Positions 1,454 through 45,879 of a stretch of DNA of 64,000 nucleotides are shown piece by piece. The notes beneath the pieces were generated by a model. It was not told where the DNA came from and searched no databases. It was given only the letters and a program-made list of their open reading frames with translations. Both the position numbers and the translations under genes were made by a program. Each line of letters opens with the position of its first letter. The first letter of the stretch is position 1. The DNA is from Hyaloraphidium curvatum SAG 235-1 (taxonomy: Eukaryota; Fungi; Monoblepharomycota): contig JAIVFI010000028.1 in assembly GCA_025558095.1 (NCBI GenBank), forward strand, positions 1-64,000, in the 5' to 3' direction.

Positions 1454-2094
1454 ATGCGCCTCGCTATGGGCGCTCCACTGCTCATGCTCCTGCACGCCTG
1501 CGCCGTCGCGGCATCCCCGCTCTCCCGCGCGTCGTCCGGCGCAGTCTTTGCTCGGTCCTGCGGGGAGTGCCCAGATACGCACTTCTGGTGAGCCCGCGCC
1601 GACAACCGAGCGTCCAACCGGCCGACATGGGCCCTCCCAACAGCGAGTACGGCTACGACGGCACCCCGACCGACTCCGTGGCGTGCGTGCCCGCCACGGC
1701 CCGCCACGACCTCTACCGCCGTTACGCGGCCACAGAGTCGGCCTGCACCGACGCCCAAGCTCTCGCTGCCGGCGCCACTGTGGTGTGCGCCACTGGGGCC
1801 TTTTTTTTCCGCGGCTGCGACGTTGCCACTGGCGCCAACGCGGCGGTGGACGCAACGTCTTCCACAGGCCTATGTGCCACGAGCCAGCTGTGCTGCATTC
1901 CCCCCGCGGCTTTCCAGGCTGCCTTCTGTGCGGGCAAGAAGATGTGCGTGGACGGGACCGCGATCGCCCTGGCTGTGACGGAGGGCGTCCGGCGGACGTG
2001 CGACCCCTCGACGGGCCAGGTGGATAACGGGACAGGAAGTTGCTCTGGCTCGACAAAGGGTGTCTTTGCCGGCTGCTGCGAGGCGGTGACCTGA
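1454..2094 (+). CDS. Secreted Cys-rich precursor, LYRRY family copy A (2 exons, ~194 aa)
   Basis: Exon 1 is 1454-1587 (MRLAMGAPLLMLLHACAVAA...AVFARSCGECPDTHF). Phase-2 intron 1588-1643 (GTGAGC...CAG). Exon 2 reads CEYGYDGTPTDSVACVP...DLYRRY followed by a 12-Cys domain. Confidence 0.85.
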
Positions 2095-2432
2095 TCCGCG
2101 TGTCCGTGGTGAGATCCCTAGCCTGTGCGTCGGGCTCCGAGCGCGTTGTCGTGCCCAGACTTTCCCCCATCCAAGGGCCCATTGCTTGAGATACCGAAGA
2201 ACTTGCTAGCAGGCCAAGCAGCTTTGCAGGAGTAGGGTGATAGTTTTCTCCACGAACATGTTTTGGGCGACGGTTGGGAAGTTTGATAAGTCATCTTCGA
2301 TATCGGATGTGCCTCCTTTCCGGCCCGGCTCCGCTGCCGCAGTAGTCCCGGACCCCACCCATGCGACAGTAGCCCCGTCCGCCCCACGGACTCTGCCCGT
2401 GGCACCGACTTTGAGAGGGGGGAGGGGGCCCC

Positions 2433-2460
2433 GGGGGGGGGGGGGGGGGGGGGGGGGGGG
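2433..2460 (+). repeat. Poly-G homopolymer (~28 nt)
   Basis: Uninterrupted G run seen directly in the sequence. Confidence 0.9.
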
Positions 2461-2519
2461 TGGCAACGCTCGGCGCGGAGCCTTCCAGCTCGACCTGGGT
2501 CCCTACTCCCTCCCGGCCC

Positions 2520-2627
2520 TGCCGAGGAGCTGCATTGCCAGCGCCCCGCCAAGCTGGTCTGCGGGCACCGTCGCCGTCCTCGTCCCCGGAAGCACCCCGT
2601 CTGCTGCGTCCGACACCGTGAACCCCC
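2520..2627 (-). pseudogene. Remnant of the 3' end of the VOC/glyoxalase gene
   Basis: ccgaggagctgcat...gtgaacccc aligns with 6163-6267, which encodes GFTLPDAAEGVLPGTRTATLPADQLGGALSMQLLG. Confidence 0.8.
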
Positions 2628-2853
2628 ATCATCGAGGGACGCTCGCCAGGGATGCACGCGACGCGGAACCAGTGCAGAGCGGCCTTCAACCGCGCTTACC
2701 GGCTTCAAAATAGACCTTTGTCTCCACCGAATAGGGCCTAAATGTGCGTGGCGACGATGCGGAAGTGGTCCCTCGCAGCGTCCCTCAAGTGTTTTCCCTG
2801 GCCGGCGGCCCCCGGACCGTTGCCACACACCGCCCGCAACCCCCAACGGCGAG

Positions 2854-3508
2854 ATGCGCCCCGCTTTCGCCGCCTTATATCTGGCGCTCCTTTGTGCCTG
2901 CGCCGCCGTCGCGGCCCCGGTCGACCCGCCGCCCGCCGGCGCCATCTTCGCGCGCTCGTGCTCCGATTGCCCGAGCACACACTTCTGGTTAGCACCGCAG
3001 TCCCATTCTCCCCGTTTCCGCTCACCAGGTCCCCCGCGCTAGCGAGTACGGCTTCGAGGGCGCCCCCGAAGACTCGGTGTCGTGCGTGCCGGTCGCCTCG
3101 GCCCGCCACGACCTCTATCGCCGCTACGCCAACGCCCCCTGCACCGACGGGTCCCTGGTCGGTGCCGGCGCTTCGATGCAGTGCGCGCCGGGGGCGAAGA
3201 TTTTCGAGGGCTGCGACTCGTCCACGGGAGCCCTCGCCCCCGCTGGCGCCACCTCCGCGGCCGGGGGTTGCTGGCCCGGCGACGAGATCTGCTGCGTCCC
3301 GGGGGCGGCCTACGCCGCCCTGTGCCAGGACGGCGCGCCCCAGTGTAAGGAAGGGAGCTTGTTCGCCCTTTTCATCACCGACGGGGTCCATCGGCCGTGC
3401 AACGTGACGAGCGGGGAGGCGGGCAACGGCGGCACGGGAACGTGCACCATATCCGGGCCGTATGCGCCCCCCGGGGTGCTCGCCGGCTGCTGCTACCCGC
3501 CAACTTGA
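2854..3508 (+). CDS. Secreted Cys-rich precursor, LYRRY family copy B (2 exons)
   Basis: Signal peptide MRPAFAALYLALLCACAAVA, then AIFARSCSDCPSTHF. Intron 2988-3042 (GTTAGC...TAG) at the family-conserved position. Exon 2 contains HDLYRRY and a 12-Cys domain ending GCCYPPT. Confidence 0.85.
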
Positions 3509-4076
3509 GTCTGGGTACGGAGGTGGGATCAACCAGGGATGCGAATGCCGCATCGTGGCCTGACTGCCGCCGGCGCTCCCGATTTCGGACGAATTGCCGA
3601 GGAGAGGGTCGACGCAGCCGCAGTTCGCGAGTTCGTGGGTTAGAAGCAAGAGGGAGCACCTCCAAGAGTGCGGTCGATCGTGGAATCACGACATTGGTCT
3701 CTTGCCGAGCCGTCGTCCGCTGACCACCTCGTTCTTTCCAGCTTCGAGGATAAGCCCCGGCCTCCGTTCTCGCCCACCCTTTCCCGACTGTCCGGCCGCC
3801 GGCCGAGCTCACGCGTCGACAGTTGTAGGGACGTCCGCTAGCCGCCCGGATCCCCCGCAATTGGGCGTCCCCTCTCGAGCGACCGACCTGCGCCCGGTCC
3901 ACGTCAGAGCAGCACTCCCAAGTGCTGTTAATCGTGCAAAAGTGTGCACGACCCAGAGCATCGCCAGCTCCCGATGGTCTCACCAAGTGCGGCGGGGCGG
4001 CGGGTCCGGGCGGGTAGTCCCTCGACGGCGAACGGGCCAAAGGGGCTACTATCCCGCTGCCCGCCTTCGAATCACA

Positions 4077-4351
4077 ATGCGCCCCGCCGTCGCCGCTCCT
4101 CTGCTGGCGCTGCTCTGCGCCTCGCCCCGTCCGCCACGGGCCTGTGCGCCTCGAGCCAGCTTTGCTGCGTGCCCCCGGCGGCATTCCAGGCCTTCTGCCC
4201 GGGCAAGAAAATGTGCGTGGACGGGACCTCGGTCGCCCTGACCGTGACGGAGGGCGTCAAGCGTACGTGCGACGTCTCGACGGGCCAGGTGGACAGCGGG
4301 ACGGGAAGGTGCGCAAAGGGCATCTTCGCCCTCTGTTGCGAGGCGACCTGA
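4077..4351 (+). pseudogene. LYRRY family copy C, internally deleted and frameshifted close paralog of copy A
   Basis: Signal-peptide codons MRPAVAAPLLALLCAS are joined out of frame to SATGLCASSQLCCVPPAAFQAFCPGKKMCVDG...CCEAT, near-identical to the C-half of copy A. The 5' and 3' flanks also resemble those of copy A. Confidence 0.8.
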
Positions 4352-4956
4352 TCTGCGTTTCCGTGGTGATATGACCTGGATGTCAGGCTACGGCGGCGCC
4401 GACACATGGTTGACTTATTTCCCCGAACTTGCCGGCGCGTCGTTTCAGAGTCGAAAAGCTCGCTAGCAGGGACAATGCGCTTTGTAGTAGTAGGATGATG
4501 GGCGTTTTCCAGGAAGATGCTTACATCGTACTTGATCACGCCTTGAATCGAACTCGCGGGCGGCGCCGTGAAGCCGGAAGGGCATTCAGTCGGTCCTTCG
4601 ACCCACGACCGGAGCAGCAAGGGGCAGGCCGGACCGTCGGAACGGGTTCTGTTCGCCAACATCTCGGTGCCCGGCAAGTCGGCCGCCGGCCACTGTCGTC
4701 GTTCCTGCACCGCCCTGCAGCACGTCAGCCAGGAAGGAAACCCGGCGGGATCGCACGCCCCGCGGAACCCGTGCACGGCATTTACCTACTTGGCAACCAG
4801 AGGCGAAATCTGGCCTCGGCGGTGCGGCACGGGGCAACAGAACCGCGCGGGGCGGTGGCGAACTTGATCCCCCAAAGTGACGGCCCGCTTCCGATCGGGG
4901 TGTTGCGCGCAAAGAAGGACACCGCACTCGTCCCCCAACCTGTGCGCGGGAGCGCC

Positions 4957-5608
4957 ATGCCGCTCGGTCTCGCTGCCACGCTGCTCGCGCTCCTGTGCGC
5001 TTCGGGCGCCCTCGCGGCCCCACTCGAGGCCCCGGCCGCCGGCGCCATCTTCGCCCGTTCCTGTGGGGACTGCCCCACCTCGCACTTCTGGTGGGCAGCG
5101 CGAGCGCCGCTCCGCCTCCGACTCCGGCTAACGGATCCCGTACAGCGAGTACGGCTACGAGGGCACCCCGCGCGACTCCGTGGCCTGCGTGCCCGCAGCG
5201 GCCCGCCACGAACTATACAGGCGGTACGACGACCCCACCGCCTGCACCGACGCCACCTCGACGGGCCAGGGCGCCACCAAGATCTGCGAGGGCGGGAACG
5301 ACTTCACCGACTACGGCTGCTACCCATCAACAGGCGCCATCGTCCCGTCGGGTTCCTCGTCGGCCCCGGGCGCGTGCCGCGGCGCCCAGAACTGCTGCGT
5401 GCCCGCGTCCGCCGTCATCGCCGAGCTCGCAGTGCTCTGCGGCACGAGCAAGCCCTGCGTGGACGGGGCCAACGTCGCGCTTACCATCCAGGACTTGCAG
5501 TACAGGTCGTGCGACCCGACGACGGGTGCGCTCGGAGGCTCGTACGAGTGCTCGAGGTATGATCAGAGTATGATCGCGGCCTGCTGTTCCCGGGCGCCCG
5601 ATGGCTAA
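4957..5608 (+). CDS. Secreted Cys-rich precursor, LYRRY family copy D (2 exons)
   Basis: MPLGLAATLLALLCASGALAAPLEAPAAGAIFARSCGDCPTSHF. Intron 5091-5145 (GTGGGC...GCTAAC...CAG). Then HELYRRY and a 12-Cys domain. Confidence 0.85.
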
Positions 5609-6134
5609 GGGGCTGGGTGGGTTGCCCAGTCGTCGACTCGCGCGGCCCGCGGCCTGACCCGCGTTCCTCTCCATAGAACGAACGATTGCCGTTCGTCGGG
5701 GGGTCTCAGGTCAGGTTTTGAGTTGTCGTCAGTTGAATTCCCATCATAATAGCCATGTTTGATCCGGTCTTCCATATCGGATGTGCCCCCTTTTGTGCTT
5801 CTGCTTCCACCGCATTCCTCGCCTCGCCCCCGGACCCTGCCCTGGCAGATGCATCGCAAGCGCCTCTGAGCAAAGAGGTCCAGGCGTCGAGGCGCTCTGA
5901 ACCATCAGCTTTCGGCCACTTGGCCTCGCTGCCCCCGGCCGTTCCTTTCGCGCCCCACACGCACCAGCCAGGAAGGATACCCAGCGGGGTTGCATGTTCG
6001 CCGGGGCCGCTGCAAGGCAGGTACCGGTGTGATCCGCTGCCACAAAATATGGCCTCGGCGAGGCCAGAGACGGGGCATGAAGCGCGTGTGAAGACGGTGG
6101 GGCAGCGGATCCGCTTCAGTGGCTGCCCCCGTCA

Positions 6135-7037
6135 CTAGGCCTGCCCCTCGCCGCCAACCCTCCCGAGGAGCTGCATCGACAGCGCCCCGCCCAGCTGGTC
6201 CGCCGGCAGCGTCGCCGTCCTCGTCCCCGGCAGCACCCCCTCGGCGGCATCCGGCAGCGTGAACCCCTTTCCTCTGGCGGCGGCCACCGCGGCGTCGACG
6301 TCGGGCACCTCGAACGAGGCCATGGGCAGAAGCCCCTCGGGCCTGGCCGCGATCGGCGACGCGGGGTTGGCGGCGGAGATGACCTCCAGCACGGCGTCGC
6401 CGATGCGCAGCTGCTGGATCCGCATCCCCCTCGCGACCACCTCCCCCGCGACGGGCACCCCGAACGCGTCCTCCCAGAACCTGCAGGCCGCCGCGGGCCC
6501 GTGCGACACCAACGCCAGGTGGTCCAGCCTCTTTAGCGGGAACCCGTGCTCGAACAGCCCCCTTGCCCTCCTGGAAGCCGTCCTCCCCCCCCTGGGCAGC
6601 GCGTACTGTATAAGGCCGAACTCGCACCCCGCCGGCGTCGGCCCGAGCGCGTTGGCCACGTCGCAGATCTTGCCGCCTCCCTCCCGCGACACGGGCGTCA
6701 CCGCGCACGGGTGTCCCATGGCTTCGAGGCGCGCAACGGCGGCCGCCAGGTCGTCCACTTCGAGCATCAGCCGCGCGACGCCGCCGCCCTTGGCCGCCAG
6801 CGCGACGTACGCGTCCCGCCCCGCAAGCAGCGCGCTCGCGTCGTCATGAACGGCCAGGAGCTCCACGTAAAAATGGTGTTCGTCCCCGACGAAAAAAACC
6901 CGGTTCGAGGTCCCCGCGCCGGCGTGGCGCGTGACGGGGGACAGGTTGAGCCCGAGCCCCTCGAAGGGCGCGGCCGCCGCGTCGAGGTCGCGCACGACGA
7001 CGACGATGTGGTCCAGGGCCGTGATGAGGGGCGGCAT
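6135..7037 (-). CDS. VOC/glyoxalase-like protein with two VOC domains, intronless
   Basis: LDHIVVVVRDLDAA...HAGAGTSNRVFF...YVELL (Glyoxalase_3-like). Second domain RLDHLALV...AVLEVI...FEVPDVDAAVAAARGKG (methylmalonyl-CoA epimerase-like). Confidence 0.85.
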   Translation of the reverse strand: MPPLITALDHIVVVVRDLDAAAAPFEGLGLNLSPVTRHAGAGTSNRVFFVGDEHHFYVELLAVHDDASALLAGRDAYVALAAKGGGVARLMLEVDDLAAAVARLEAMGHPCAVTPVSREGGGKICDVANALGPTPAGCEFGLIQYALPRGGRTASRRARGLFEHGFPLKRLDHLALVSHGPAAACRFWEDAFGVPVAGEVVARGMRIQQLRIGDAVLEVISAANPASPIAARPEGLLPMASFEVPDVDAAVAAARGKGFTLPDAAEGVLPGTRTATLPADQLGGALSMQLLGRVGGEGQA

Positions 7038-7529
7038 CGCGTGAAAGGGGAGGGGGAGCCGCGAGGTTGGAATGGGAGGCAAAGCGCCCGCTCACGGACG
7101 CCCGACCATGCGTCTTCTTCCCTGCTCCGAGCACCCGCACGGGAGCCAGTATTGTTTCGAATCTACTCGCGGGAAGCACCATCCAGCTCAATGCCGGGCA
7201 TGCAATGTCCGGCACCAACAGCCACCCCCGCCCCCCTGAGCACGCACAGCCCGAGCCCCAGTGTGAACAGCGAACGTCCTCGCGGTCCCGAACGTCACCA
7301 CGAACCCCGTGGACGGCACCCGTTCACGGCCGCGAGGGATTTAGGTCCGCCTCCTCCTCCTTCCCCGGACGGAGCCCAACCCTTCCGCGGGCGCTCTGCG
7401 CTCCGTCAACGCAATCCGAGGATCCGACCCCCTACTTATGCGCCCGAATTTACCTCCCAATACACATCCCCCGCCTCCCGATACTAGCTCCTTGGCTTCT
7501 TAACTCCCGTGGCGACCCCCGTCCGGCTA

Positions 7530-7920
7530 CCCATCTGTGCTCGTTCTGCGCCCTGTGCCTCCACAGCGCGTCGGCAGCGCCGCAGCACATGGATGTGCAC
7601 GGGAAGCCGGGTTCCGTCGAGCGGAGCCTGCGGGTGTCCAATGTTGTCACAATTCGTCAGCCGGAGCCGGGCAGACGAGGAGGGGACCGGAGCACCCACG
7701 CGTGAAATACCGCCCGCGCTGCCTCCGGAAGGCCTTGTCGTCCTCGTGCGAGTTTCCGCCGTGGTACCCTGTGGGTTCGCATCCACTGGTGCGTCAGCGC
7801 CGCATGCAGCGTGCGCCGACGCCGGGCCGGCTCTCCAGAGTCCTCCCCCGAATGCGGCGTTCTGTGGGTCCCGGCACACACAGTGTCCTGCCAGCGCCGA
7901 AAGCCACCGACCGGCGCCGG
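7530..7920 (-). pseudogene. Degenerate inverted copy of the zinc-finger 3' region
   Basis: 7538-7575 reverse complement gccgacgcgctgtggaggcacagggcgcagaacgagca matches 10568-10605. ~7700-7800 matches ~10297-10405, including intron sequence and aactcgcacgaggacgacaag. Confidence 0.75.
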
Positions 7921-8740
7921 CCGCGACCCACGGTGCGGGGCGGCAGTCGAACCCATCCTCGCGGGCTGCATCGCGCACCAGAGTACCGCCTGATTGCCCG
8001 ATTCACATCTCGTTCGGCGTCCCGCGGGCGTCGGTTGCGGTGCCGCACCCGCCCCGCCCCGCTCCCGTTCCGTCCCGTCCGCGACCGAGCCGGAATCGCG
8101 GACCGGCAGTGCACCGCCGCCAGACCGCTCCGTACACCCTGATGGCCGTCCCGGGAGGGCAACGCGGGAGGGGGACCCGCGCCGGACGAGGGACGTCCCG
8201 GCCTCTGCGCGCGCGAGGGGGCCCGCGCCGGCGGGAAGCCGGCCAAGGGTGTCGGTCGGTTCGGAATAAGGTGGCCGAGACGAGCACCGCGACCCGGTGG
8301 GAGGATGGGGAGCGCGGATCGCCCGGGAAGCAATTTGCCGAGCTTGGGAGCGGCAGGGTGATTCACCCGCCCGCTGGTCTCGAACGGACTGGCGACCGGT
8401 GAACAAACGATGACCGTCGCCAGTAAATCGTAGCCTCAGATACGCGGCCGCTCGGTTCCCGGGAGCCGGATGGATTCGCCGTTCGCCGCCGTGCGGGGGG
8501 GCTTTTCCCGGATGCCGCTCCGAGCACCGTCACCCCGTCCGTCCGCGGGATCGGCGTCCCCCGGCGCTCGCCCCAATGCTCCCGGCACGCGTTCCGCCAT
8601 GCGATGCGATCGCGGCCTCGAAATCCTGCCGGCGGCGCGTCGGGGCGCCCGGTCGCACGAGTCCGTGTTGCCCATCCGCTCCAGGCCGAGCCCCGCTCCG
8701 CCCCGCCGCACGGCACGCCACAGGTCGTCACTCGCTCGCC

Positions 8741-10609
8741 ATGGCTTCCCGTGCCCCCGATGGCCCGACCGCCGAGGAGTGGGTCGCGTGGGCGCTCGCG
8801 GCGTCGGGGATCGGGCGATCGCCCGCCGCCGCCGCATTTCTCCCCCAGCAGAGGATGGCCGACCGCCGATCGCCCCCCACGCTCTCCGCGTCCGAGGCCC
8901 TGCAGGGGCTGTCTGGCGTGTCGATCCCGCAGGGCTTCACGTTCCGCCCGTCGCCGGCGGTGCTCGCTGCCGCGGGGCGGGCGGCCGCGGCGAGTCAGCC
9001 CCCCGCGGGGTTGCCGGTGCCCCCCGCGGCCGCGGGGATGCCGACCCCCATGCTGCTCTCGCGGGGCGCGCCGGGTGACGTGGCGATGCTGTTCGGCGGG
9101 CCGCCGTCGTTCCCGGGGCAGCCCATCGGGTTGGGGCTGCTCGCGCCCCCGCGGCCGCCGTCGCCCGACTGGGCCGCGCTGCTGCGCGACCCGCCCTCGC
9201 AGCCGCGCTCCCCGCAGCACTCCTCCGACGACGACGCCGACGCCCGCCGCCCCGCCCTGCCCGCCGCCCGCCCCGCCCGCATCACCGTGGCTTCCTCGCC
9301 CTTCGCCACCGACCCGGCCTCCCCGCTCCGCTCCGCCCCGCCCTCCGCCACCCCCGCCGTCACCTCCGAGAACGACGCGCCCTTCATCGACCACTTCCTC
9401 GCCGCTCCCTCGTCCGACGGCGGCGCCGACCTCGACCCGCTCGGCGGCCTGCTCGAGCCGTTCGCGGGCATGCACGCCGACGGGGGGGACTTTCCCGTGA
9501 TCGACGACGCGGAGATGCAGCTGTGGCACGGGATCGTCGGCCGGGAATCGTCCGAGGACCGGGAGAGGTACGGCGAGGCGATTGGGGGGGAGGAAGCCGA
9601 TGATGAGTCGGCGGCCGACGTCATCCGGCGGTGGCTCTACCCCCCTGGCGGCCAGCACCCCATCCGCTCCCCCCTCCCCGCGGACCCCATGCAGCTCGAC
9701 GCCCTCCCCGGCCCCGACTTCGACGTCGATGCCGCGCATCAGGAGCGGGAACCCGACGTCGACGCCACCGACCACGAGCAACCCGCCCCCGACGCCGACG
9801 CCTCGGACCACGGCGGCACCGACGCGGACGACGAATCCCGCCCCGGCGGCGCCCCGTCCTCCCCCTCGGGGTACTCCCCCTCCCCGTCCCCGCCGCGCAC
9901 GCGCCGCCGGCGCAACCCCCCGCGCCGCGCGGCCACATCCCCGTCGCCGGCGCCGGAGATCCTCACCACCCCGATCCTCAAGGTCGAGCCGCGCAAAGGT
10001 CGGCCGATCTACTACACCGGCCGCCTCGCGCTCGAACGCCCCTCGTCGCCTCCCCCCGAGTCGGATTCGGACACCGACGGCACGGGCGAGTTCGCGGCGC
10101 CCGACGACGGCACGGGCGGGGGGAGGCGGAGGCGGGCGCGGCTGCCGGCACCGAGCAGGGTCAACGTCAAGGACGAGGAGGGAGGCAAGACCAAGAAGCG
10201 CGGGTTCAGGTGCGAGGTGGAGGGGTGCGGGGAGGATTTCGGGACGTGGAACGCGTACCGTGGGCCCCCCCCGCCCGGCTCCGTCGTCGCACTCTTGGCG
10301 CTGACGTACAGCGGTATTCGCGGACCCGCAGAATACCACATCCGCAACTCGCACGACGAGCACAAGCCCTTCCGGTGCCGCGAGTGCGGGCGGGGCTTCA
10401 CGCGCGCGCACGACATGCGCCGCCACGGGACGTGGGTGCTCGGCGCCTCCGCCAACGGCTTCCCGCCGCTGACGGATTCCCCCCGGCTGCATGGCACCCA
10501 CAGGCTGCACTCGAAGGAACGCCGCTTCCCCTGCCCGGCGAAGGGCTGCGGCGCCGCGTTCTTCCGCGCCGACGCGCTGCGGCGGCACAGGGCGCAGAAG
10601 GAGCACTAG
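8741..10609 (+). CDS. C2H2 zinc-finger transcription factor (3 fingers, long Pro/acidic N-terminus)
   Basis: Fingers CEVEGC...HIRNSH, KPFRCRECGRGFTRAHDMRRH and FPCPAKGCGAAFFRADALRRH. Two inferred 72-nt introns (10260-10331, 10432-10503) have GTGGG donors and GCTGAC branch sites; their removal restores finger spacing. Confidence 0.85.
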   Translation: MASRAPDGPTAEEWVAWALAASGIGRSPAAAAFLPQQRMADRRSPPTLSASEALQGLSGVSIPQGFTFRPSPAVLAAAGRAAAASQPPAGLPVPPAAAGMPTPMLLSRGAPGDVAMLFGGPPSFPGQPIGLGLLAPPRPPSPDWAALLRDPPSQPRSPQHSSDDDADARRPALPAARPARITVASSPFATDPASPLRSAPPSATPAVTSENDAPFIDHFLAAPSSDGGADLDPLGGLLEPFAGMHADGGDFPVIDDAEMQLWHGIVGRESSEDRERYGEAIGGEEADDESAADVIRRWLYPPGGQHPIRSPLPADPMQLDALPGPDFDVDAAHQEREPDVDATDHEQPAPDADASDHGGTDADDESRPGGAPSSPSGYSPSPSPPRTRRRRNPPRRAATSPSPAPEILTTPILKVEPRKGRPIYYTGRLALERPSSPPPESDSDTDGTGEFAAPDDGTGGGRRRRARLPAPSRVNVKDEEGGKTKKRGFRCEVEGCGEDFGTWNAYRGPPPPGSVVALLALTYSGIRGPAEYHIRNSHDEHKPFRCRECGRGFTRAHDMRRHGTWVLGASANGFPPLTDSPRLHGTHRLHSKERRFPCPAKGCGAAFFRADALRRHRAQKEH

Positions 10610-10689
10610 ATCGGGGGCCCCGCCGTCGGAGGAGCATGGGTGGGACGGGGGAACATGTATGCGGAGGCAAATTCGGGCTCATATAGAAG

Positions 10690-10795
10690 GACGCCGTCGG
10701 TGCAGGCCGGCATGGCGGCGGGCTCGTAGCGCCGGTAGAGGTCGGCGCGAGAAGAGATGCCGACGCAGGTGACCGAGTCGGCGGGGGCGCCTCGT
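10690..10795 (-). pseudogene. LYRRY family copy E, short remnant
   Basis: Translates GAPADSVTCVGISSRADLYRRYEPAAMPACTDG. No signal-peptide exon and no C-terminal domain are visible. Confidence 0.7.
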
Positions 10796-11022
10796 AGACG
10801 AACCGACGGAGATCGACGTAGGTGTACTAGGCCGCGCGCTCGGAACGTTGCAAGCGCTCGCGACGTCGGAAAGCGATCCAATCTACCGCACGCGAAGTTT
10901 ACAACAGTCCTAGACCACGCCATACCGACCGAAACTGAACCCCTGGAGCCGTGGGTGATGGTCAGCGGATGGGCCCGGCCCTGCGGCCTGCCGGAATTCC
11001 ACTTTTCCGTTCCCGCGGCGCG

Positions 11023-11623
11023 CTACGGGGCGAGGCAGCAGCCGGCCGGGCCGCCGGCATAGATCCCGGAGCACAGTCCGGCCCCACTGCCCACCTGGCC
11101 CGTCGCGCGGTCGCATGCCAGCCGGACGCCGTCCGCCGCGGTCAGGGCCAGTTCGGCGCCGTCCACGCAGACCTTGTTCGACAGGCAGTTGGTGAGCAGG
11201 GCCCACGGCACGCAGCACAGCTCCGTGTCCACCGAGGCGCAGACCCCGGAGACCGAGGCGGCGCCAGGCGGCGGGGATGCCCCGGTGGCGACGGTGCAGA
11301 TGTCCCCGTCGGTTATCCCGGCGGAGCACTGCTTCTGCGCACCGAAGCCGAGCAGGGTCGTGTCGGTGCAGGTCGGCAGCCCGTCGTAGCGGCGGTAGAG
11401 TTGGCGGAGCCCGGCGGCGGCGGAAACACAGGCCACGGAATCGGCCGGGGCGCCCGGGTAGGCGAACTCGCTGCCGGATGGTGGCGGTCAGCCGGGGAAC
11501 GAACGCCCCTGCGCTTCCGGAGCGGGCGAAGATGGCTCCGGCGGCCGGGGCCTCGAGCGGGGCCCCCAGGGCGACGAAGGCCGAGAGAAGAGCGAGCAGC
11601 GCGGCGGCGGCGGCGTGGCGCAT
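11023..11623 (-). pseudogene. LYRRY family copy F; end of exon 1 and the splice donor are deleted, exon 2 is intact
   Basis: MRHAAAAALLALLSAFVALGAPLEAPAAGAIFARS runs straight into intron-like sequence (GCTGAC...CAG) without CxxCPxxHF or the canonical donor. Exon 2 reads EFAYPGAPADSVACV...QLYRRY plus 12 Cys. Confidence 0.7.
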
Positions 11624-11884
11624 GGCGGCTTCGGGGCGCGGCAGCGCGGACTGTCTCTCGCGTCGCGCAGATGGCGGCGGGTGGGCAGTGATGATTCTCA
11701 GGGCTCGGCGGGAGACCGGGGCGGCGCGATTCTTGGCGAGAGTCTGGACACTCGTGCGGCTCGATGCGGGAAGCGGCCCAACGCCGCCCACGAAATGCCC
11801 CGACACACCCGACTGCGCGTCCATTTGCCTCGCCCCGCTATATCCGTACTCCCGGCAACTGGTTTCTTTTTGATCGAGGCCAAG

Positions 11885-12003
11885 GATGGGAGCCGCCGAA
11901 GGGGCTGATGCCGGGGACGAGGACGGCGATGGTGCCGGTAGACCAGCTGGGAGTGCTCCGGCGATGCAGCTCCTCGCCGGCCATGGAAGACGGGCGGGCC
12001 TAG
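11885..12003 (+). pseudogene. Second remnant of the VOC gene 3' end
   Basis: Translates in pieces as AAEG / MPGTRTAMVPVDQLG / MQLL, matching DAAEGVLPGTRTATLPADQLGGALSMQLL. It lies tail-to-tail with copy G, as VOC does with copy D. Confidence 0.7.
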
Positions 12004-12217
12004 GTCGAGCGGGAAAGGTGCAAATCACAGGGGCGGGCTTAGGTCGAGCGAGGAGGCTGCAAGTCCAGGTGTTCTTTCCTGGGTGTACAGCAATTGCCGA
12101 TGACTGCTACTTCTGCGGGAGATCCTTTCGAACTGCGAGATGCTTTGTCGGACGGACTGGCCGGCATTCAGTCCCGCCATCCGCACGCACGGCTCTCTGG
12201 CCCACCTGGAACACGGC

Positions 12218-12851
12218 TCACGAAGCGAAGCAACAGCCCGCGGCCCTGCCCGCAATCATTTGCTGGCAGTTCCCCGTGCCGGTGTTGCCCGTCTCGCCCG
12301 TCGCGACGATGCAGGTCCGCGGGGAGAAGTCGGTGATGGTGAGCGCGATCTCGTCCCCCACGACGCAGTACTTGTCGCCCCCGCACATGCCCACGATGCC
12401 CGACGCGGGGACGCAGCACAGGTTCGTGCCGGTGCCGCTGGTGCACGCGCCCTTAGCCGAGCCGGCGCCCGCGGGGGAGATGGCGCCGCTGGAAGCGTCG
12501 CAGCCCTGCCACTCCTGGGCCCCGGAGGGGCATTTTACCGTGGCGCCCTTGCCGAGGGCGTCGGTGTCGGTGCAGGCGGGGCTGTCGTAGCGGCGGTACA
12601 GCTCGTGGCGGCGCGCGGTCGGCACGCACGCGATCGAGTCGGCGGGCGCGCCCGGGTAGGCGAATTCGCTGGGGGAGGGCGCGGTCAGCCGGCAAAGGAG
12701 GCACTGCGGTTTGAGATGCGGCCCACCAGAAGTGGTAAGCGGGGCATTCGGAACAAGAGCGGGCGAAGACGGCGCCGCGTTCGGCCGGGGCCGCGAGCGC
12801 CGTTCCGGCGGACAGGAGCAGGAGCAGCGCGGCCGCGAATGAGCAGCGCAT
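12218..12851 (-). CDS. Secreted Cys-rich precursor, LYRRY family copy G (2 exons)
   Basis: MRCSFAAALLLLLSAGTALAAPAERGAVFARSCSECPAYHF. Intron 12669-12726 (GTGGGC...GCTGAC...CAG). Then CEFAYPGAPADSIACVP...HELYRRY and a 12-Cys domain. Confidence 0.85.
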
Positions 12852-13461
12852 CGTCGCAGAGAGGCGGATGGGTGGTCGGATTGGATGAACCCCTTTTGGG
12901 GATCCGTTCAAGCACCGTCCCCGCGCGCGCTTCCCGCCCGCCCCCGCAGAGCCGGTGGCGGATGCGGAAACACTTGGCCAGGACGCTGTCCCCTGCGCAT
13001 TGGCTCCCCGGCGCGTGCGACCCCGCTGGGTGTCCTTCCTGGCTGGTCCGGTCGGCTTTTGGAAGCCATGTGCGGACTACAAACGGCGAGAACGCTCCAT
13101 GTCCCGCGGCTTCGTTTCGTTGTCAGTTTACTATGCTGGCCTCACAATAGTGCCCATTCACTTCAGGAATCGAGTGAAAATTGGCTGGACAAGCACTAGG
13201 TCGCGGGACCGGGCCGGTGCCATCAATGGTTGATTTGGGAGGAAGGGCGGACGATATTGGACAACAGTGGTGCTATACAAAATGCGGAAACAAGTGTCGG
13301 TGTCATGTATGGGGGATACGGCAACGAATCGCGGTCCTGTCCGTAGAAAGCGGGCCGGGCGTCGCCAAGTTTGCCACCGGGCCCCGTCGACGCGTCGCTG
13401 CCATCTGCCTTCCGAGCAGACGGCGCTCCTCTACTGTCTTGCCGACCATAGGGACCCAGCC

Positions 13462-15136
13462 ATGGGAATCCCTCAGGAAATCGCGCCCGGGATCGCAACG
13501 GGCCCGGCTCCGGACGGAAACGCGGACGCGTCGCCCGATGCGTCCCCCGCCTCCTCCACTTCTCTTCCCGCCACGCCGTTTTTCACAGCATCAGAGCTGC
13601 TCACCATGTTCCCCGCCGCTCTGCCGCCCCCCGACGACCTGATCCCCGGCGCCATCCCGCCCGACCCTGCCGCCGAGCTCCGCGAAGCCGACCCTCTCAA
13701 CGAAACCGCCCTCCTCCGTGCCCTCGCGCCCTACCCTGCCCTTCGCGCCCTGGCGCGCTTGCAGCTGGGTTTTGTGCCCCTCTGGAGCACATTCACCGCG
13801 CCCCTCCTCGTCGCAAACACAATCGCTGCCTCGGGGACGCTCGCGGCCTCCTTCGTCTTCGGCGTCGACACCTTCGGAAAGCGTAACCTGGCCATCACCG
13901 GGGGGCTGTGGGTGCTGCTCATGCTCTTGATCACCGTCCTTGCGCTGTCGAGGGTCTCGTCGCGGAAACGGAGCTTCGCGGCCGAGGGCGGCGACCTGGG
14001 CTCCGTCCCGTTCGCGCCCTTCGCGCGGTGGCACCAGCTGGCGGGCAGTTTCCCCGCAAAAGACACAGAAGACGGCCGCTCATCTTCGGGCGGAAACATC
14101 TCGCCCCTGGTGCGCCACCGGGACGGCGACCCCCTCTGCCCGTGCCACCGCTCGACGTGCGGCGGCTCGCTCGTCGGTCCGGCTGTCTTCTTGCGCTGCT
14201 TGGACATCATTGCGCGTTACCTCATCCTTGTGGGGGGCTATTTTTTCGCGGGTTACACCGCGCTGGTCACCTTCGGCCGGCAAACGTGGACCACTCCATG
14301 GTCGGCCTTTTTCGCCGCGCTCCTAGGTGGGTAGGTAGAGGGTCCGCCTCGGCCATGCTGAACCGTCTTCCCAGTCTTCATAACGGTCGTGCTGCCGCTT
14401 CTGCCGGCCATCGCCATCGGGGGGAGCAACATCTACTCGCTGCGCCTCGGCCAGAGACTGCACTGCCGCGGGCTCCGGCGCGTGCTGGCCGCCTTCCTCT
14501 CTCGATACGAGTCTGCCCTCCTCGGCGGCAAGACGCCGTCGGTGCGGACGCGGAACCCTACGAGGACATCTGCGAGCGACTGGCGGTGCTGTGGCGCAAC
14601 CGGTTCCCGAGCAGATCCGCAACGCCCGTCGTCATGACCAACTACCTGCTGGTTCCTGTTATCGTCGCCATTGCCACCATTGTGAGTCATTCCGTCTTGA
14701 CGCCGCACCCCCGTTCACGCCCCCGCCCGAACAGATCTCGGGCTCCTGCATCCCCGCGTGGCCCTTCTTCACCTTTGCCTACGGCCTCCTCCTCGTCTTC
14801 ACCGACCTCGTCAACCACGCCTCGTCCAACTCCCAGGTTTCCGCCGCCTCTTCCCTCCTCCGCCAGGCCGCCAAGGAATCCACGCGGCTCCTCGCACGCG
14901 CGTCCGCCCAGGGCCTCGCTGCCAGCCCCGCCGCCGCCGCCCTGGCCCGGCACGCGGAGCTGCTTTCAGCCTACGCGGCCGCGGACGGATGCAAGGCACG
15001 GTTCGCGGGGTTCGTGGTGACGTACGGGACTGCGAGGACGTTCGCGGTCACGCTGTTCACCCTGGGGGTCGGGCTGTGGAGCGTGCTCAGGGGGGCGGGG
15101 GTGTACGTGGTGCCCGACATTGCGTGCCCGGCGTAG
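13462..15136 (+). CDS. 7-TM membrane protein, DPLCPC family paralog 1 (2 introns; apparent frameshift near 14540)
   Basis: Shares DPAAELR..DPL, DPLCPC..TCGG, TWTTPWS and the C-terminal GFVVTYGTARTFAVTLFTLGVGLWSVLRG motif with 38927-40324 and 47828-49444. Introns 14327-14374 and 14682-14734. The frame changes between GGKTPSV and DAEPYEDI. Confidence 0.75.
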
Positions 15137-15256
15137 GAACCAGAAGATCCCAGTACAAGGGCTTGGGATTCACAGCCGGATTCGTGAATGAATTGAACCT
15201 TCCCTAACCCCTGTCTCCTAGCCGTTCCCGGGGAATCCTAACCGCCGCGCGCGGAT

Positions 15257-16328
15257 TCACGAAAGGCCCCCGCCAAACACCTCGACCCCCTCCTCCTCGG
15301 CGCGCTGCATGAGCTCGTCGTCCGCCATCTCCCCCTCCTCCTCCACGACCTCCTCCTCACCCGGCGCCCCAATGGCCCCCGGCACCCCGCCAAACAGCTC
15401 CCCCCACGCCTCCCTCAACCCCCACACGCTATCCACCGTCCAACCCCTCCCCTCCAACCCCGGCCTGCACCGCGGCCACGCGAGGTGGTTCCTCTCCCTT
15501 TTGGCCCGCGACTTGGCGACCATCTCCGCCGGCATGGACGTGAGCAGGTGCTCGGCGTCGGGCCCGGCGGCGTGGTGCGCGCGCGGGTGGCCGGGCTCGT
15601 CGAGGTGCGCGGCGTGCCAGCCAAAGTGTGTCCGCGCGACGTCTGGAAACAACGTCAGCGGCCGAAATCGCACGCCAGCAGCGGGAGAACCCACCGCAGT
15701 TCTCCCAGTTGTCGTCGATGAAGTAGATCTGCAGCCTCGGCCCCCCTTCGTGCCGCGCCTCGGGCCCGTACTCGGCCAGCCACCGCTCCCACACCCCCGC
15801 GTCCTTCATCGCCTTCACGTAGGCCCCCGCCTCGGGCTTGGCGACGAAGAACTTGTCGCGGTAGTCGCACGCCGTGATCCCGTCGAAGTGGTGGCGCACC
15901 TTCAGGGCCCCGAGGATCCTTTCCGCGTGCCGCATCTGGCCGTTGGTGAACACGTGCTTCCTGTACCCCTTGAGTGAGGACAAGAACGAGTCCAGAATCC
16001 CCGGCAGCTCCGGCGGCAGCAGCTCCAGCGGCACGCCGCCGTCGACGTGCCTGTCGAACGCGTCCACGTCCACGTCGAACTCGTCCACGAGGCCGTGCAG
16101 CGACATGCCGTAGGCGTTGAACCACTGGAAACACCGCCGGCGGCTCTCGTCGTCGGTGAAGCCGATGGTGCGGCAGAAGGAGTAGAGGTTTTCGGTCATG
16201 TGCGCGCCGATGCCGCACGAGCGCGGGTACAGGCAGTTGTCGAGGTCGAACACGAGCAGCGTGTGCGCCGGGTCCGGCAGAGTGGGCGGCGGGCCGTCGG
16301 CTGCAGCCGCCGAGGCGCCTGACGGCAT
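15257..16328 (-). CDS. HAD-superfamily pyrimidine 5'-nucleotidase (SDT1/PHM8-like)
   Basis: Motif I VFDLDNCLYP, then YGMSLHGL, FTNG, HFDGITACDY, AKPE and YFIDDN. Intron 15643-15694. Confidence 0.9.
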
Positions 16329-16947
16329 TGCGGCGGTGACGAGGCGGGCCGGCGGGCGGTGTTGTCTTGGGCGAAGCGGGGCCGAGGCGGCCGCCAATCG
16401 CGGCCCGACGGTACGAGCGAGACTGGCGAAAAGGCGATGTGGCGAAATTTCGGTCAATGGAGCCGGCGGAACGGAACAGGAGCTGTGGAGCGGGTCGGGT
16501 ACACGTGGAAGCGGGTCCGCGATCTTCTGCGGACTCCCGGACCACAGACCTGCGATCGTGCGTTTCCGACTTGCGAGCCAAAGGCATCGAAAGACGAAGC
16601 TTGACCTCCTAAAACTGTCCTCGATGGCCACTTTCCGTTGGTAGACTGTCCCCAGCTTCTCTCTATCCCGCCCGGTGGAGGCTGCCCGGTGGGCTGTGGC
16701 GACTGTTGCCCCGATGGCGCCTGCCGCCGCGTCTACGCAATCCAGCGTGTCACAGCGTCGCAGCGCTGCTGCACCCTTCTTTCGACCAGCCCTCGACCTT
16801 GTATCTGGATCATGCGGGAAGCGCGCGCATATCAATATATCTCGTCGGCGGATGTTTACACGGGACTTTGGATGTTCCTGAAAGCACGTCAGTCTGCGGC
16901 AGCAGCGAGAGGCAACGCAACACGTGCCTCCGGGATCCGCTGCCGTC

Positions 16948-17568
16948 CTATGTCGGGCATGTCGCCGACAGCGTGGGGCACGTCAGGCCATACTTGACGT
17001 ACCAGTTGAACAGCGTCCCTCCCGTCGTACGTCCGGTAGTGCCGACGGTGTTTAGCTGATACATATCAGTGCCCACGACGGCGTATGCGGCGCACGACGA
17101 CCCCATGCTGGTGCACATGGCAGCGGCCTCCGCGTCGGAGGATACTGGCGTCACATACGCGGGAGCACCGCTGCAGGGGGCAAACGTGCCGCAGTCGATG
17201 TACTCGGGGGCGTAGCGCCGATATAGCGAATGGTAATCGGTGTCCTTCTGGCCGATGCAGGCGACTTGGTCCTCCGACGCACCGGGGTGCCCGAACTCGC
17301 TGCGGGGCGGAGCGCGGCGTGATATGAGCCGTCCGACGTCGCCGCGGTGCCGCGGGATATTCGTTACCAGAACGTGTCCTGCCCGCACTCGGAACACGAC
17401 CGGGCAAAGAGGATGTGTGAAGGGCCTCCGTCCCCGCCGCGGACAGGCCTGGCGGTGCAGGGTCAGGAAGTGCGGCCCGGCGGAACCACTCGCGCGGTCT
17501 TACGTGGCCCCCGCGAGCGCAAGGAGAGCGGCGAAGGTGACAAGCAAAAGCAGCAACGGGCGTGACAT
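16948..17568 (-). CDS. Secreted precursor, LYRRY family copy H with a different mature domain (3 exons)
   Basis: MSRPLLLLLVTFAALLALAGAT | intron 17449-17503 | PVRGGDGGPSHILFARSCSECGQDTF | intron 17300-17367 | CEFGHPGASEDQVACIGQKDTDYHSLYRRY, then a 6-Cys domain unrelated to those of copies A-G. Confidence 0.8.
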
Positions 17569-17739
17569 GGTGGACATTGGATTGGTGTTTGAGGTGAGTT
17601 TTCCGCAAACCCTGCGGCGGGGGGGGGGGGTGTTCGGTGAGGGATGCTGCACACCTTGCATGGAAGGTCACCGACAAGGCGCTCCATTGATAGAGCGAGC
17701 TGGTTCCGTAATGTTTCACCCGCTCTGGCTTGGAATTAG

Positions 17740-44301: not shown

Positions 44302-45879
44302 ATGGAAGTTCGCGAACCGATGGGGATGGCCATGCAGCCGGCCGTTCTCCTGGCAGCGAACACGATGGACAACGAGGGAATCGCCTCGGATGGACGGGAA
44401 GTGAAGGCGGATGCCGGGTTGGCGCCCGTCGCGGGTTCCCCGGCTCCCCCGGAGGTGCACCCCGCTCCCGCCCCGACCGCGGCGCCGCTGTGGCTGCCCG
44501 CGCTGCCCGGCCCCGCACAGCACCTCGTGCTCGCGTCGCTGTCGGCCGCCGATCTGTGGTCGCTGTGCCGCACGTCGACCGCCGCCCGCAGCGCCGTCGC
44601 GCACGGCTTCCACGCGTGGCTCAAGGACGCGCCGCTGCACCACTGCAACCCCGCGCACGCCGGAAACACCGCGCCCGCCAACCTGCCGCTCGCCTTCCTC
44701 GCCTTCGTGCTCGGCCTCGGCAACCCGTCGCCCGGCTCGGAGCAGTGGCGCTCCTTCCGCAAACTGTACCGCCGCTACGGCTCGCAGGCCGCGGTCCCCG
44801 CGCCCCTCACGCCCGCCGACGTGGCCGACGCCCGGCGCTGCCCGCTCGGCTGGGACCCCGCCGACTGGAACTCGCCCGCCTACGACCACCTCATGAACGA
44901 CCCGCCTGAGTACCTCGTCTCGCGGCCGCTGCCGCTGCGCATGCGCGAGGCGCTGGGCCAGCTGGTCTGGAGCATGGTCTACTGGATGTGCGACTCGGGC
45001 GGCGACCCGTACCACATCCGGCGCTGGCCCCTGCGCGTGCAGCCGCCGCCCGACGAGGACCCGGTCAACGGCAGGCTGGTCGAACAGGGCCACTTCAGGC
45101 GGCAGCCGCCCGTTCGCCGCATCCCGCGCGAGTGGGCCGACGACGCCGCCGAGCCGGACGACCCGGAGGAGAAGCCCGGTCCGCACGGCGAGGAGTCGCC
45201 CGTGCTGCGCGCCCTGCGCGTGCGGCGCTACCTCGACCGCTGCTGGACCCTCATCTGGCGCTTCGCCGGCCCCGTCCCCAGCGAGATCCTCGCCGCCTCC
45301 AAGGGCCTCGCGCAGCACCGCGACAAGCGCCGCCGCGGCCCCGCCCGCGCCGACGCCGAGTTGCACGCCGACGCGCTCGAAACCTTCCCGCACCCGGCCA
45401 GTGTGTGCTCCAAGAACCTGTACCCGCGCATGCTGCTCAACCTGGTCAAGAGGGGGGACTACCGCACCCTGGAGCTGCTCCTGCTGTGCTTCGGCGCGCC
45501 CGAGAAGGAGTGGCGCACGGACCTGCGCCGCCCGCCGCCGCTGCCGCCCACCAACAACGGGGAGAACGGCACGCAGCCGCAGCAGCAGCAGCAGCAGGAG
45601 CAGAAGGAAAGCTGCTGCGACGGGTGCCTGCGCTTCGACCCGCCCGCCGGCGTGCCGCCGCCCCCAGGCGGGAGGAGGTGGCTCGTTTGGTTCACGCAGA
45701 AGGGGTCCGGTGGGCCGCACCTCGCGCTGGACGGGGACTGGGACACCTCGGCGCCGCTGTACGGGAAGGTGAGGGCGGTGGTGGATGCGCACGGAGGCAT
45801 TCTGGGGAGGGCGCCGGTACCCGAGGCTGCCGATGATGGTGGGGTGCTGGGCGGCATCTTTGGGCTGCTGCCGATCTGA
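44302..45879 (+). CDS. Hypothetical protein with an N-terminal F-box-like motif (start codon uncertain)
   Basis: WLPALPGPAQHLVLASLSAADLWSLCRTSTAAR. Long GC3-rich ORF with a short CAG/polyQ tract near 45580. Confidence 0.65.
   Translation: MEVREPMGMAMQPAVLLAANTMDNEGIASDGREVKADAGLAPVAGSPAPPEVHPAPAPTAAPLWLPALPGPAQHLVLASLSAADLWSLCRTSTAARSAVAHGFHAWLKDAPLHHCNPAHAGNTAPANLPLAFLAFVLGLGNPSPGSEQWRSFRKLYRRYGSQAAVPAPLTPADVADARRCPLGWDPADWNSPAYDHLMNDPPEYLVSRPLPLRMREALGQLVWSMVYWMCDSGGDPYHIRRWPLRVQPPPDEDPVNGRLVEQGHFRRQPPVRRIPREWADDAAEPDDPEEKPGPHGEESPVLRALRVRRYLDRCWTLIWRFAGPVPSEILAASKGLAQHRDKRRRGPARADAELHADALETFPHPASVCSKNLYPRMLLNLVKRGDYRTLELLLLCFGAPEKEWRTDLRRPPPLPPTNNGENGTQPQQQQQQEQKESCCDGCLRFDPPAGVPPPPGGRRWLVWFTQKGSGGPHLALDGDWDTSAPLYGKVRAVVDAHGGILGRAPVPEAADDGGVLGGIFGLLPI

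Follow-up and report, generated by a model that had tools for sequence, protein, structure and literature searches.

The closest described counterparts of the gene family treated here are the effectors with a Kex2-processed pro-domain (K2PP), such as SnTox3, ToxA and the SIX proteins, in which a signal peptide is followed by a pro-region that ends with KR/RR or LxxR and then by a Cys-rich mature protein, with a kexin as the presumed protease (PMC8528282). Kex2 cuts after KR or RR, with Arg at P1, and the extended motif LxxR applies as well (PMC8528282). The present family was found in a window of 64,000 nucleotides (bases 1-64000 of contig 28, G+C content about 68%) in the 31.9 Mb, 55-contig assembly of Hyaloraphidium curvatum. 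The window contains eight gene copies, here named A to H, and in the intact copies a signal peptide is followed by a module of about 45 residues with four invariant Cys, by the motif LYRR, by a Tyr and by a cargo domain. H. curvatum is a free-living, aquatic monoblepharid fungus, whereas the K2PP effectors belong to plant-pathogenic fungi.

Like the K2PP effectors, the members of the family begin with a probable signal peptide, seen as a hydrophobic core (a 10-residue window with a mean Kyte-Doolittle value of at least 2.0) that precedes the module in 68 of 71 annotated proteins, in which the first Cys stands at median residue 40. The pro-region is closed by KR/RR or LxxR within the first half of the protein, and LYRR matches both the RR and the LxxR motif of Kex2 (as defined in PMC8528282). 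The two systems differ in the pro-region itself. The pro-domains of K2PP effectors are unlike each other between families, whereas the H. curvatum module is nearly identical in motif over at least 139 paralogs with unrelated cargos. Furthermore, the pro-regions of K2PP effectors are described as free of secondary structure, with disorder-promoting residues, whereas the module has its four invariant Cys and three predicted strands, with a predicted local distance difference test (pLDDT) score above 90.

Other systems share some of these features. The conotoxins and the mussel MgCRP-I superfamily resemble the 12-Cys subfamily of the present proteins in their pattern of selection (PMC11860864, PMC4558851). 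Their mature parts are, however, homologous and have one Cys framework, whereas the H. curvatum cargos have unrelated folds, which makes the module combinatorial. The prepro leader of the yeast alpha-factor escorts its cargo through the endoplasmic reticulum (ER) and the Golgi, and Kex2 then cleaves it off behind the dibasic site LDKR, in which P4 is also Leu. This leader is particular to one gene family, is glycosylated and not disulfide-bonded, and has neither sequence nor fold similarity to the module. The C-terminal domain (CTD) of bacterial type IX secretion and the chromatophore transit peptide (crTP) of Paulinella are folded tags on at least 100 unrelated cargos and are removed after transport. 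They resemble the module in logic only, as organisms, protein ends and pathways are others and there is no homology; also, there is no sign of a dedicated destination for the H. curvatum module. The usual way to classify the secreted proteins of fungi is by mature domain and, to our knowledge, no shared, folded and disulfide-bonded leader that heads at least 139 genes with unrelated cargos has been described from fungi. The module offers an easy way to pick out, by sequence, a large share of what this early-diverging fungus secretes, and it poses the testable question of what the job of a structured pro-domain is: folding, sorting or anchoring.

The size of the family follows from a profile of the exon-2 translations, which finds the module in at least 139 matches on 44 contigs of the assembly, a lower bound obtained from 150 scored candidates. 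About 26 matches are full-length, while more than 100 cover just the first 30-100 positions, i.e., the module. A preliminary description of the window, made from its sequence, had reported a family of eight copies; these copies are real, but the scope was too narrow. Motif and intron were inspected in 68 unique loci, which is about half of the at least 139. The consensus reads [VIL]F-[RKA]-R-S-C-x-[ED]-C-x5-C-E-[FY]-x-Y-P-G-[AT]-P-x-[GD]-x-V-A-C-[VI]-x7-12-L-Y-R-R-Y, where the F and R of the FxR stretch are more than 90% conserved. Among 58 modules, LYRRY is exact in 53 and replaced by LYKR in a few others, and the residues before S-C are RR in 20, AR in 15 and KR in 13. The same phase-2 intron lies inside the third Cys codon in 57 of the 68 loci, and three loci are intronless. 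The module is single in every protein, never repeated, and follows directly after the signal peptide. Four NCBI models (P0051, P0062, P0019 and P0043) place it deep within the protein, e.g., at residue 794 out of 1318, or after a domain of the VIT family. Since these internal modules carry a signal-like hydrophobic stretch of their own just upstream, each model has probably fused two adjacent genes.

Within the reach of the data, the family appears to be restricted to H. curvatum. When a profile of module plus cargo was run with HMMER against 1.84 billion representative proteins, where other monoblepharid genomes are covered via their annotated proteins, only 77 matched at E ≤1e-3. The source was looked up for 27 of these 77, the weakest included, and was H. 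curvatum in every case. H. curvatum proteins were also the only ones returned when word-indexed searches were run with exon 2, the module region of the NCBI protein P0001 or the family alignment, but such searches are too insensitive for counting paralogs. The literature found on Hyaloraphidium consists of papers on its mitochondrial genome and on chitin, with none on the LYRRY family.

In contrast to the module, the cargos are diverse. The 94 unique cargos fall into 35 groups without BLAST link, among them 12-Cys domains (22), PAN-like domains with 8-10 Cys (22), 6-Cys domains (7), Cys-free immunoglobulin-like domains (5) and singletons (25). Pfam domains in the cargos are PAN, Kelch, NHL, EGF, WSC, Stig1 and ALK_LTK_GRD, and most cargos have no match. 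Copies A, B, D, F and G carry a 12-Cys domain of 120 residues, while copy H joins the common module to an unrelated 6-Cys cargo of 87 residues, which is one of the singletons. The PAN matches of other family members are sub-threshold, and neither the copy H exon nor the corresponding NCBI model P0053 matches a PAN profile. The 12-Cys domain consists of two 6-Cys halves, in which all six Cys are in register and a C-D-x-x-T-G…C…CC signature is common (hhalign local P 0.0016), so that an internal duplication has modest support from the sequence. Our best guess for the role of the 12-Cys cargo is extracellular binding or association with the cell wall, because its sister cargos are PAN, WSC, EGF and Kelch/NHL domains. 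Exon shuffling at the boundary between module and cargo was considered as a general source of this diversity and rejected, since an intron lies at or near LYRRY in only 2-3 of 31 mapped genes; in 21 of the 31, the second half of the module and the entire cargo are in one exon.

That the module occurs on at least 35 unrelated types of cargo, some of them Cys-free, argues for a general leader or pro-domain and against a chain of a specific toxin. The balance therefore tips, if slightly, towards a module that is a shared, structured pro- or leader domain and that would be clipped at LYRR↓Y. According to this reading, the module would enter the ER together with its cargo and form two disulfides. 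Late in the secretory pathway, a convertase of kexin/furin type would cut after LYRR, leaving a cargo that starts with Tyr, and before the cut the attached module would probably aid the folding or the sorting of the cargo. If cleavage is true, the module is also a candidate secretion leader for expression systems. Candidate proteases are encoded: P-domain matches number 11 in all, and at least three loci of kexin-type convertases combine Peptidase_S8 with a P-domain, at the following places:

contig 21:106766-107026, Peptidase_S8 and P-domain
contig 33:286159-286437, Peptidase_S8 and P-domain
contig 17:596445-596612, Peptidase_S8 and P-domain

Yeast has a single Kex2, and the H. curvatum set looks larger, as judged from the domain matches. 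The earlier suggestion that LYRR is a Kex2-type motif thus appears sound, in that LYRR fits both the dibasic and the LxxR form and that putative convertases are present.

The layout is most easily followed in the window itself, where LYRRY turns up in six-frame scans at seven places in the stretch from 1.4 to 17.3 kb, on the plus strand in copies A, B and D and on the minus strand in E, F, G and H. All seven are preceded by the motif E[YF]xxxGxPxD[SQ][VI][AST]C[VI], and the module part of exon 2 gives profile E-values of 1e-9 to 1e-19 per copy, far past chance. Copies A, B, D, G and H are intact, and C, E and F are broken:

1454..1587, plus strand, copy A, exon 1: signal peptide, spacer, VFARSCGECPDTHF and the TG of the third Cys codon, equal to residues 1-44 of P0001
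1588..1643, plus strand, copy A, phase-2 intron of 56 nucleotides, GTGAGC..CAG, implied by the NCBI model P0001
1644..2094, plus strand, copy A, exon 2: second half of the module, LYRR-Y, 12-Cys cargo of 122 residues, stop codon
2854..3508, plus strand, copy B, intact, with 12-Cys cargo: exon 1 2854-2987, intron 2988-3042, exon 2 3043-3508, with a spliced contig
4077..4351, plus strand, copy C, broken: signal-peptide codons 4077-4124, last 70 residues of the cargo 4139-4351
4957..5608, plus strand, copy D, intact, with 12-Cys cargo: exon 1 4957-5090, intron 5091-5145, exon 2 5146-5608, with a spliced contig of 1559 nucleotides
10606..10794, minus strand, copy E, fragment: GAPADSVTCV..LYRRY and about 20 cargo residues remain, with unrelated sequence elsewhere
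11023..11623, minus strand, copy F, broken at its 5' end: exon-2 open reading frame (ORF) 11023-11470 still open
12218..12851, minus strand, copy G, intact, with 12-Cys cargo: exon 1 12727-12851, intron 12669-12726, exon 2 12218-12668, equal to P0002
16948..17577, minus strand, copy H, intact: signal-peptide exon 17503-17577, intron 17448-17502, FARSC exon 17368-17447
16948-17367, minus strand, copy H, 3' part: phase-2 intron 17300-17367, last exon 16948-17299

In the five intact copies the upstream exon has a hydrophobic, signal-like start, followed by [VIL]FARSCx[ED]C and five further residues. The phase-2 intron, 55-68 nucleotides long, then splits the third Cys codon, with TG|GT at the donor and AG|C at the acceptor. 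Take copy A as an example: spliced in this way, it encodes 44 + 1 + 149 = 194 residues, the same length and sequence as the NCBI protein DFJ74DRAFT_645557 (P0001), a hypothetical protein of H. curvatum to which the exon-2 translation is 100% identical. Copy G corresponds to the NCBI model P0002, and copy H to a part of P0053. Splicing is also seen in transcript contigs from one public run, which is guessed to be RNA, has adapter ends present and is unable to rank expression. In these contigs, positions 2988-3042 of copy B and 5091-5145 of copy D are omitted, 55 nucleotides each, with GT..AG ends and exactly at the predicted introns; joined contigs over both introns mean that spliced transcripts exist. 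The sole RNA-like piece from copy A is an unspliced contig of 151 nucleotides, and no contig of the run maps to copy C. Copy H has one additional intron, between the signal-peptide exon and the FARSC exon. The preliminary description had given the shared order of signal peptide, module, LYRR-Y and cargo, the phase-2 intron through a Cys codon, and the count of five intact and three broken copies. The order is borne out by the six-frame scans and by the NCBI models for A, G and H, the intron by the spliced contigs for B and D and by the model for A, and the count was right; only the gene structure of copy H needs its extra intron.

The broken copies have lost different parts. Copy C has lost its module, its intron and the N-terminal half of its cargo by deletion, so that the signal-peptide codons join the end of the cargo almost directly and out of frame. 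Copy F retains its signal peptide and IFARS, with the first two Cys codons and the splice donor deleted.

The contig over copy D also omits 75 nucleotides (window 4713-4789) upstream of the start codon, with CT..AC ends, which read GT..AG in the reverse direction, and 60 nucleotides (window 5615-5676) right after the stop codon, with GT..AG ends. These extra gaps may be introns of untranslated regions, or may come from an antisense transcript or a chimeric contig.

All predicted structures were computed from 20-72 paralogous sequences. For residues 21-194 of P0001, AlphaFold2 with 72 alignment rows gives a mean pLDDT of 90.4. The module is predicted as a small beta-sheet domain in its own right, with the three strands VFA, HFCE and SVACV. 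A helix is predicted over PATARHDLYRR, and together with the next residues it is the least confident stretch of the model, with a pLDDT of about 70. The pLDDT of the cargo is 94-98 in the whole model and 95.1 when the cargo is modelled alone, while the predicted template modelling score (pTM) rises from 0.69 with the whole protein to 0.84 with the cargo alone. This pattern fits a pair of independent domains with a flexible connection between them, in which R-R|Y lies.

No characterised family was matched in Pfam, PDB sequence or fold searches. The best fold matches of the module are big defensin and helianthamide (Z 3.1, root-mean-square deviation 2.6 Å over 40 residues), which is within noise and not diagnostic; the beta-defensin-like fold is a three-stranded sheet with three disulfides, and the module has only four Cys. 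The 12-Cys cargo alone matches no PDB chain at Z ≥2 among 48,161 representatives, and Foldseek against the PDB gives nothing at E ≤1e-3, either with the whole model or with the cargo alone. Accordingly, a KP6-type alpha/beta-sandwich was rejected for the cargo, which is a confidently predicted domain that has no structural counterpart in the PDB. Neither the module nor the cargo profile matched a PDB sequence; in a separate sequence search CIN1 (2lht, E 0.08) and the hydrophobin HFBI (E 0.35) came up as weak hints and were rejected as noise. Feature searches in the ESM Atlas gave nothing usable, and a fold search there returned trypsin-like barrels at a template modelling score of about 0.3, which are not usable either. 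Hydrophobins are, like the present proteins, small, secreted and fungal, and contain two CC pairs. Their families (PF01185 and PF06766) have, however, eight Cys arranged as C-CC-C-C-CC-C, whereas the 12-Cys cargo has C-C-C-C-CC twice, and a hydrophobin identity was rejected for lack of any Pfam hit at E up to 10 and of any fold match. Hence the view that the family is uncharacterised is supported by these searches.

Module and cargo also differ in how they evolve. When A, B, D and G, all of them intact, are compared codon by codon after joining of their exons, the module has a ratio of nonsynonymous to synonymous substitution rates (dN/dS) of 0.13-0.50, as against 0.45-1.10 for the cargo and 0.6-0.9 for signal peptide and spacer, in agreement with the earlier proposal of a conserved pro-module and a faster cargo. 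The synonymous divergence dS is 0.5-1.1 in all three parts. From this follows that the conservation of the module reflects purifying selection and not recent gene conversion, and also, since dS is near saturation, that the ratios are rough. Judged from these codon comparisons, the evolution of the cargo is relaxed or diversifying.

It remains to weigh the clipped leader against other explanations, and several points weigh against cleavage. For one, the cut at LYRR is inferred. The near-invariant L and Y, and the Tyr at P1', exceed the needs of a simple dibasic site, and the predicted helix over ..DLYRR means that the motif may have a structural role or, on a retained module, act as a binding site. 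Furthermore, known Kex2-processed pro-domains are described as devoid of secondary structure (PMC8528282), whereas the module is folded and disulfide-bonded. The main rival is, indeed, that the module is never removed but serves as a permanent N-terminal domain, e.g., as an anchor or adaptor for binding to cell-wall polymers, to receptors or to other modules. LYRRY would then be an amphipathic helix packed on the domain with its two Arg exposed at the surface, for which the Leu (position i) and the two Tyr (i+1 and i+4) are well placed on one face. The conserved F and R of FxR lie within a predicted strand, and many cargos are binding domains typical of surface proteins. What makes permanent retention rather unlikely is that the module is always single and right behind the signal peptide, while binding modules usually also occur C-terminally or repeated, that the invariant RR coincides exactly with the domain boundary, where the model is least confident, and that the site fits the Kex2 motif in a genome that encodes convertases. 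The clipped-leader reading can also be carried further, to a lineage-specific, folded N-terminal domain for export or sorting, which would bring more than 100 unrelated cargos to one destination and then be clipped by an expanded set of kexin-like convertases. This extension is unlikely enough to be offered only tentatively. If true, the destination might be, e.g., the cell wall or a special secretory compartment, the cassette would parallel, in a eukaryote, the logic of the type IX secretion CTD and other cleavable sorting domains, and the invariant N-terminal Tyr could serve a common later step, e.g., cross-linking in the wall.

Two further explanations assign the module a more active part. 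The preliminary description had proposed a dedicated two-chain toxin or antimicrobial as in KP6, with a 4-Cys peptide of 35 residues, released by cuts at FAR and LYRR, next to the 12-Cys protein. KR or RR before S-C in 33 of 58 modules, and Arg in 52 of 58, would provide two flanking basic sites; the module has weak beta-defensin-like matches, the cargo evolves fast, and the tandem arrays turn over near a contig end. The window copies, however, have Ala at P2, and V-F-A lies in what is predicted to be the first beta-strand of the module; since FAR is a poor Kex2 site and within a predicted strand, release of a free 35-residue peptide is doubtful. A Z of 3.1 is at noise level for such searches, and neither part matches KP6, KP4, hydrophobins or any toxin in fold or sequence. 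Above all, a module that at least 139 genes have in common and that precedes no fewer than 35 unrelated types of cargo, Cys-free domains and beta-propellers among them, is not the partner chain of this particular cargo, and the proposal is improbable. An explanation of very low probability is that the CxxC pair makes the module a redox-active pro-domain, an intramolecular disulfide isomerase for its cargo that is clipped afterwards, modelled on the propeptide of von Willebrand factor, which furin cleaves and for whose CGLC motifs an isomerase role has been proposed. C-x-[ED]-C is invariant and most cargos are rich in Cys (6-24), but several (P0017, P0024, P0028 and P0035) have 0-2 Cys, and the four invariant Cys in a confidently predicted, compact domain favour two structural disulfides over a free redox pair.

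The window holds the largest tandem cluster of the family, which lies close to the start of contig 28, at 1.4-17.5 kb. Of the 139 family matches, 27 lie in the first 25 kb of a contig, where 4.3% are expected (p ~5e-11). When tandem clusters are collapsed, 14 of 107 lie within 50 kb, where 8.6% are expected (p 0.08), so that the excess is weak. Among the copies there are also a 315-residue ORF (window 6135-7082, minus strand) and a 677-residue ORF (window 8576-10609, plus strand) with C2H2-type zinc-finger-like Cys/His motifs at its C-terminus. A further in-frame LYRRY occurs at window 44764-44778 on the plus strand (..FRKLYRRYGSQ..); it has no Cys module, the family profile gives no match, and it probably arose by chance in an Arg-rich translation.

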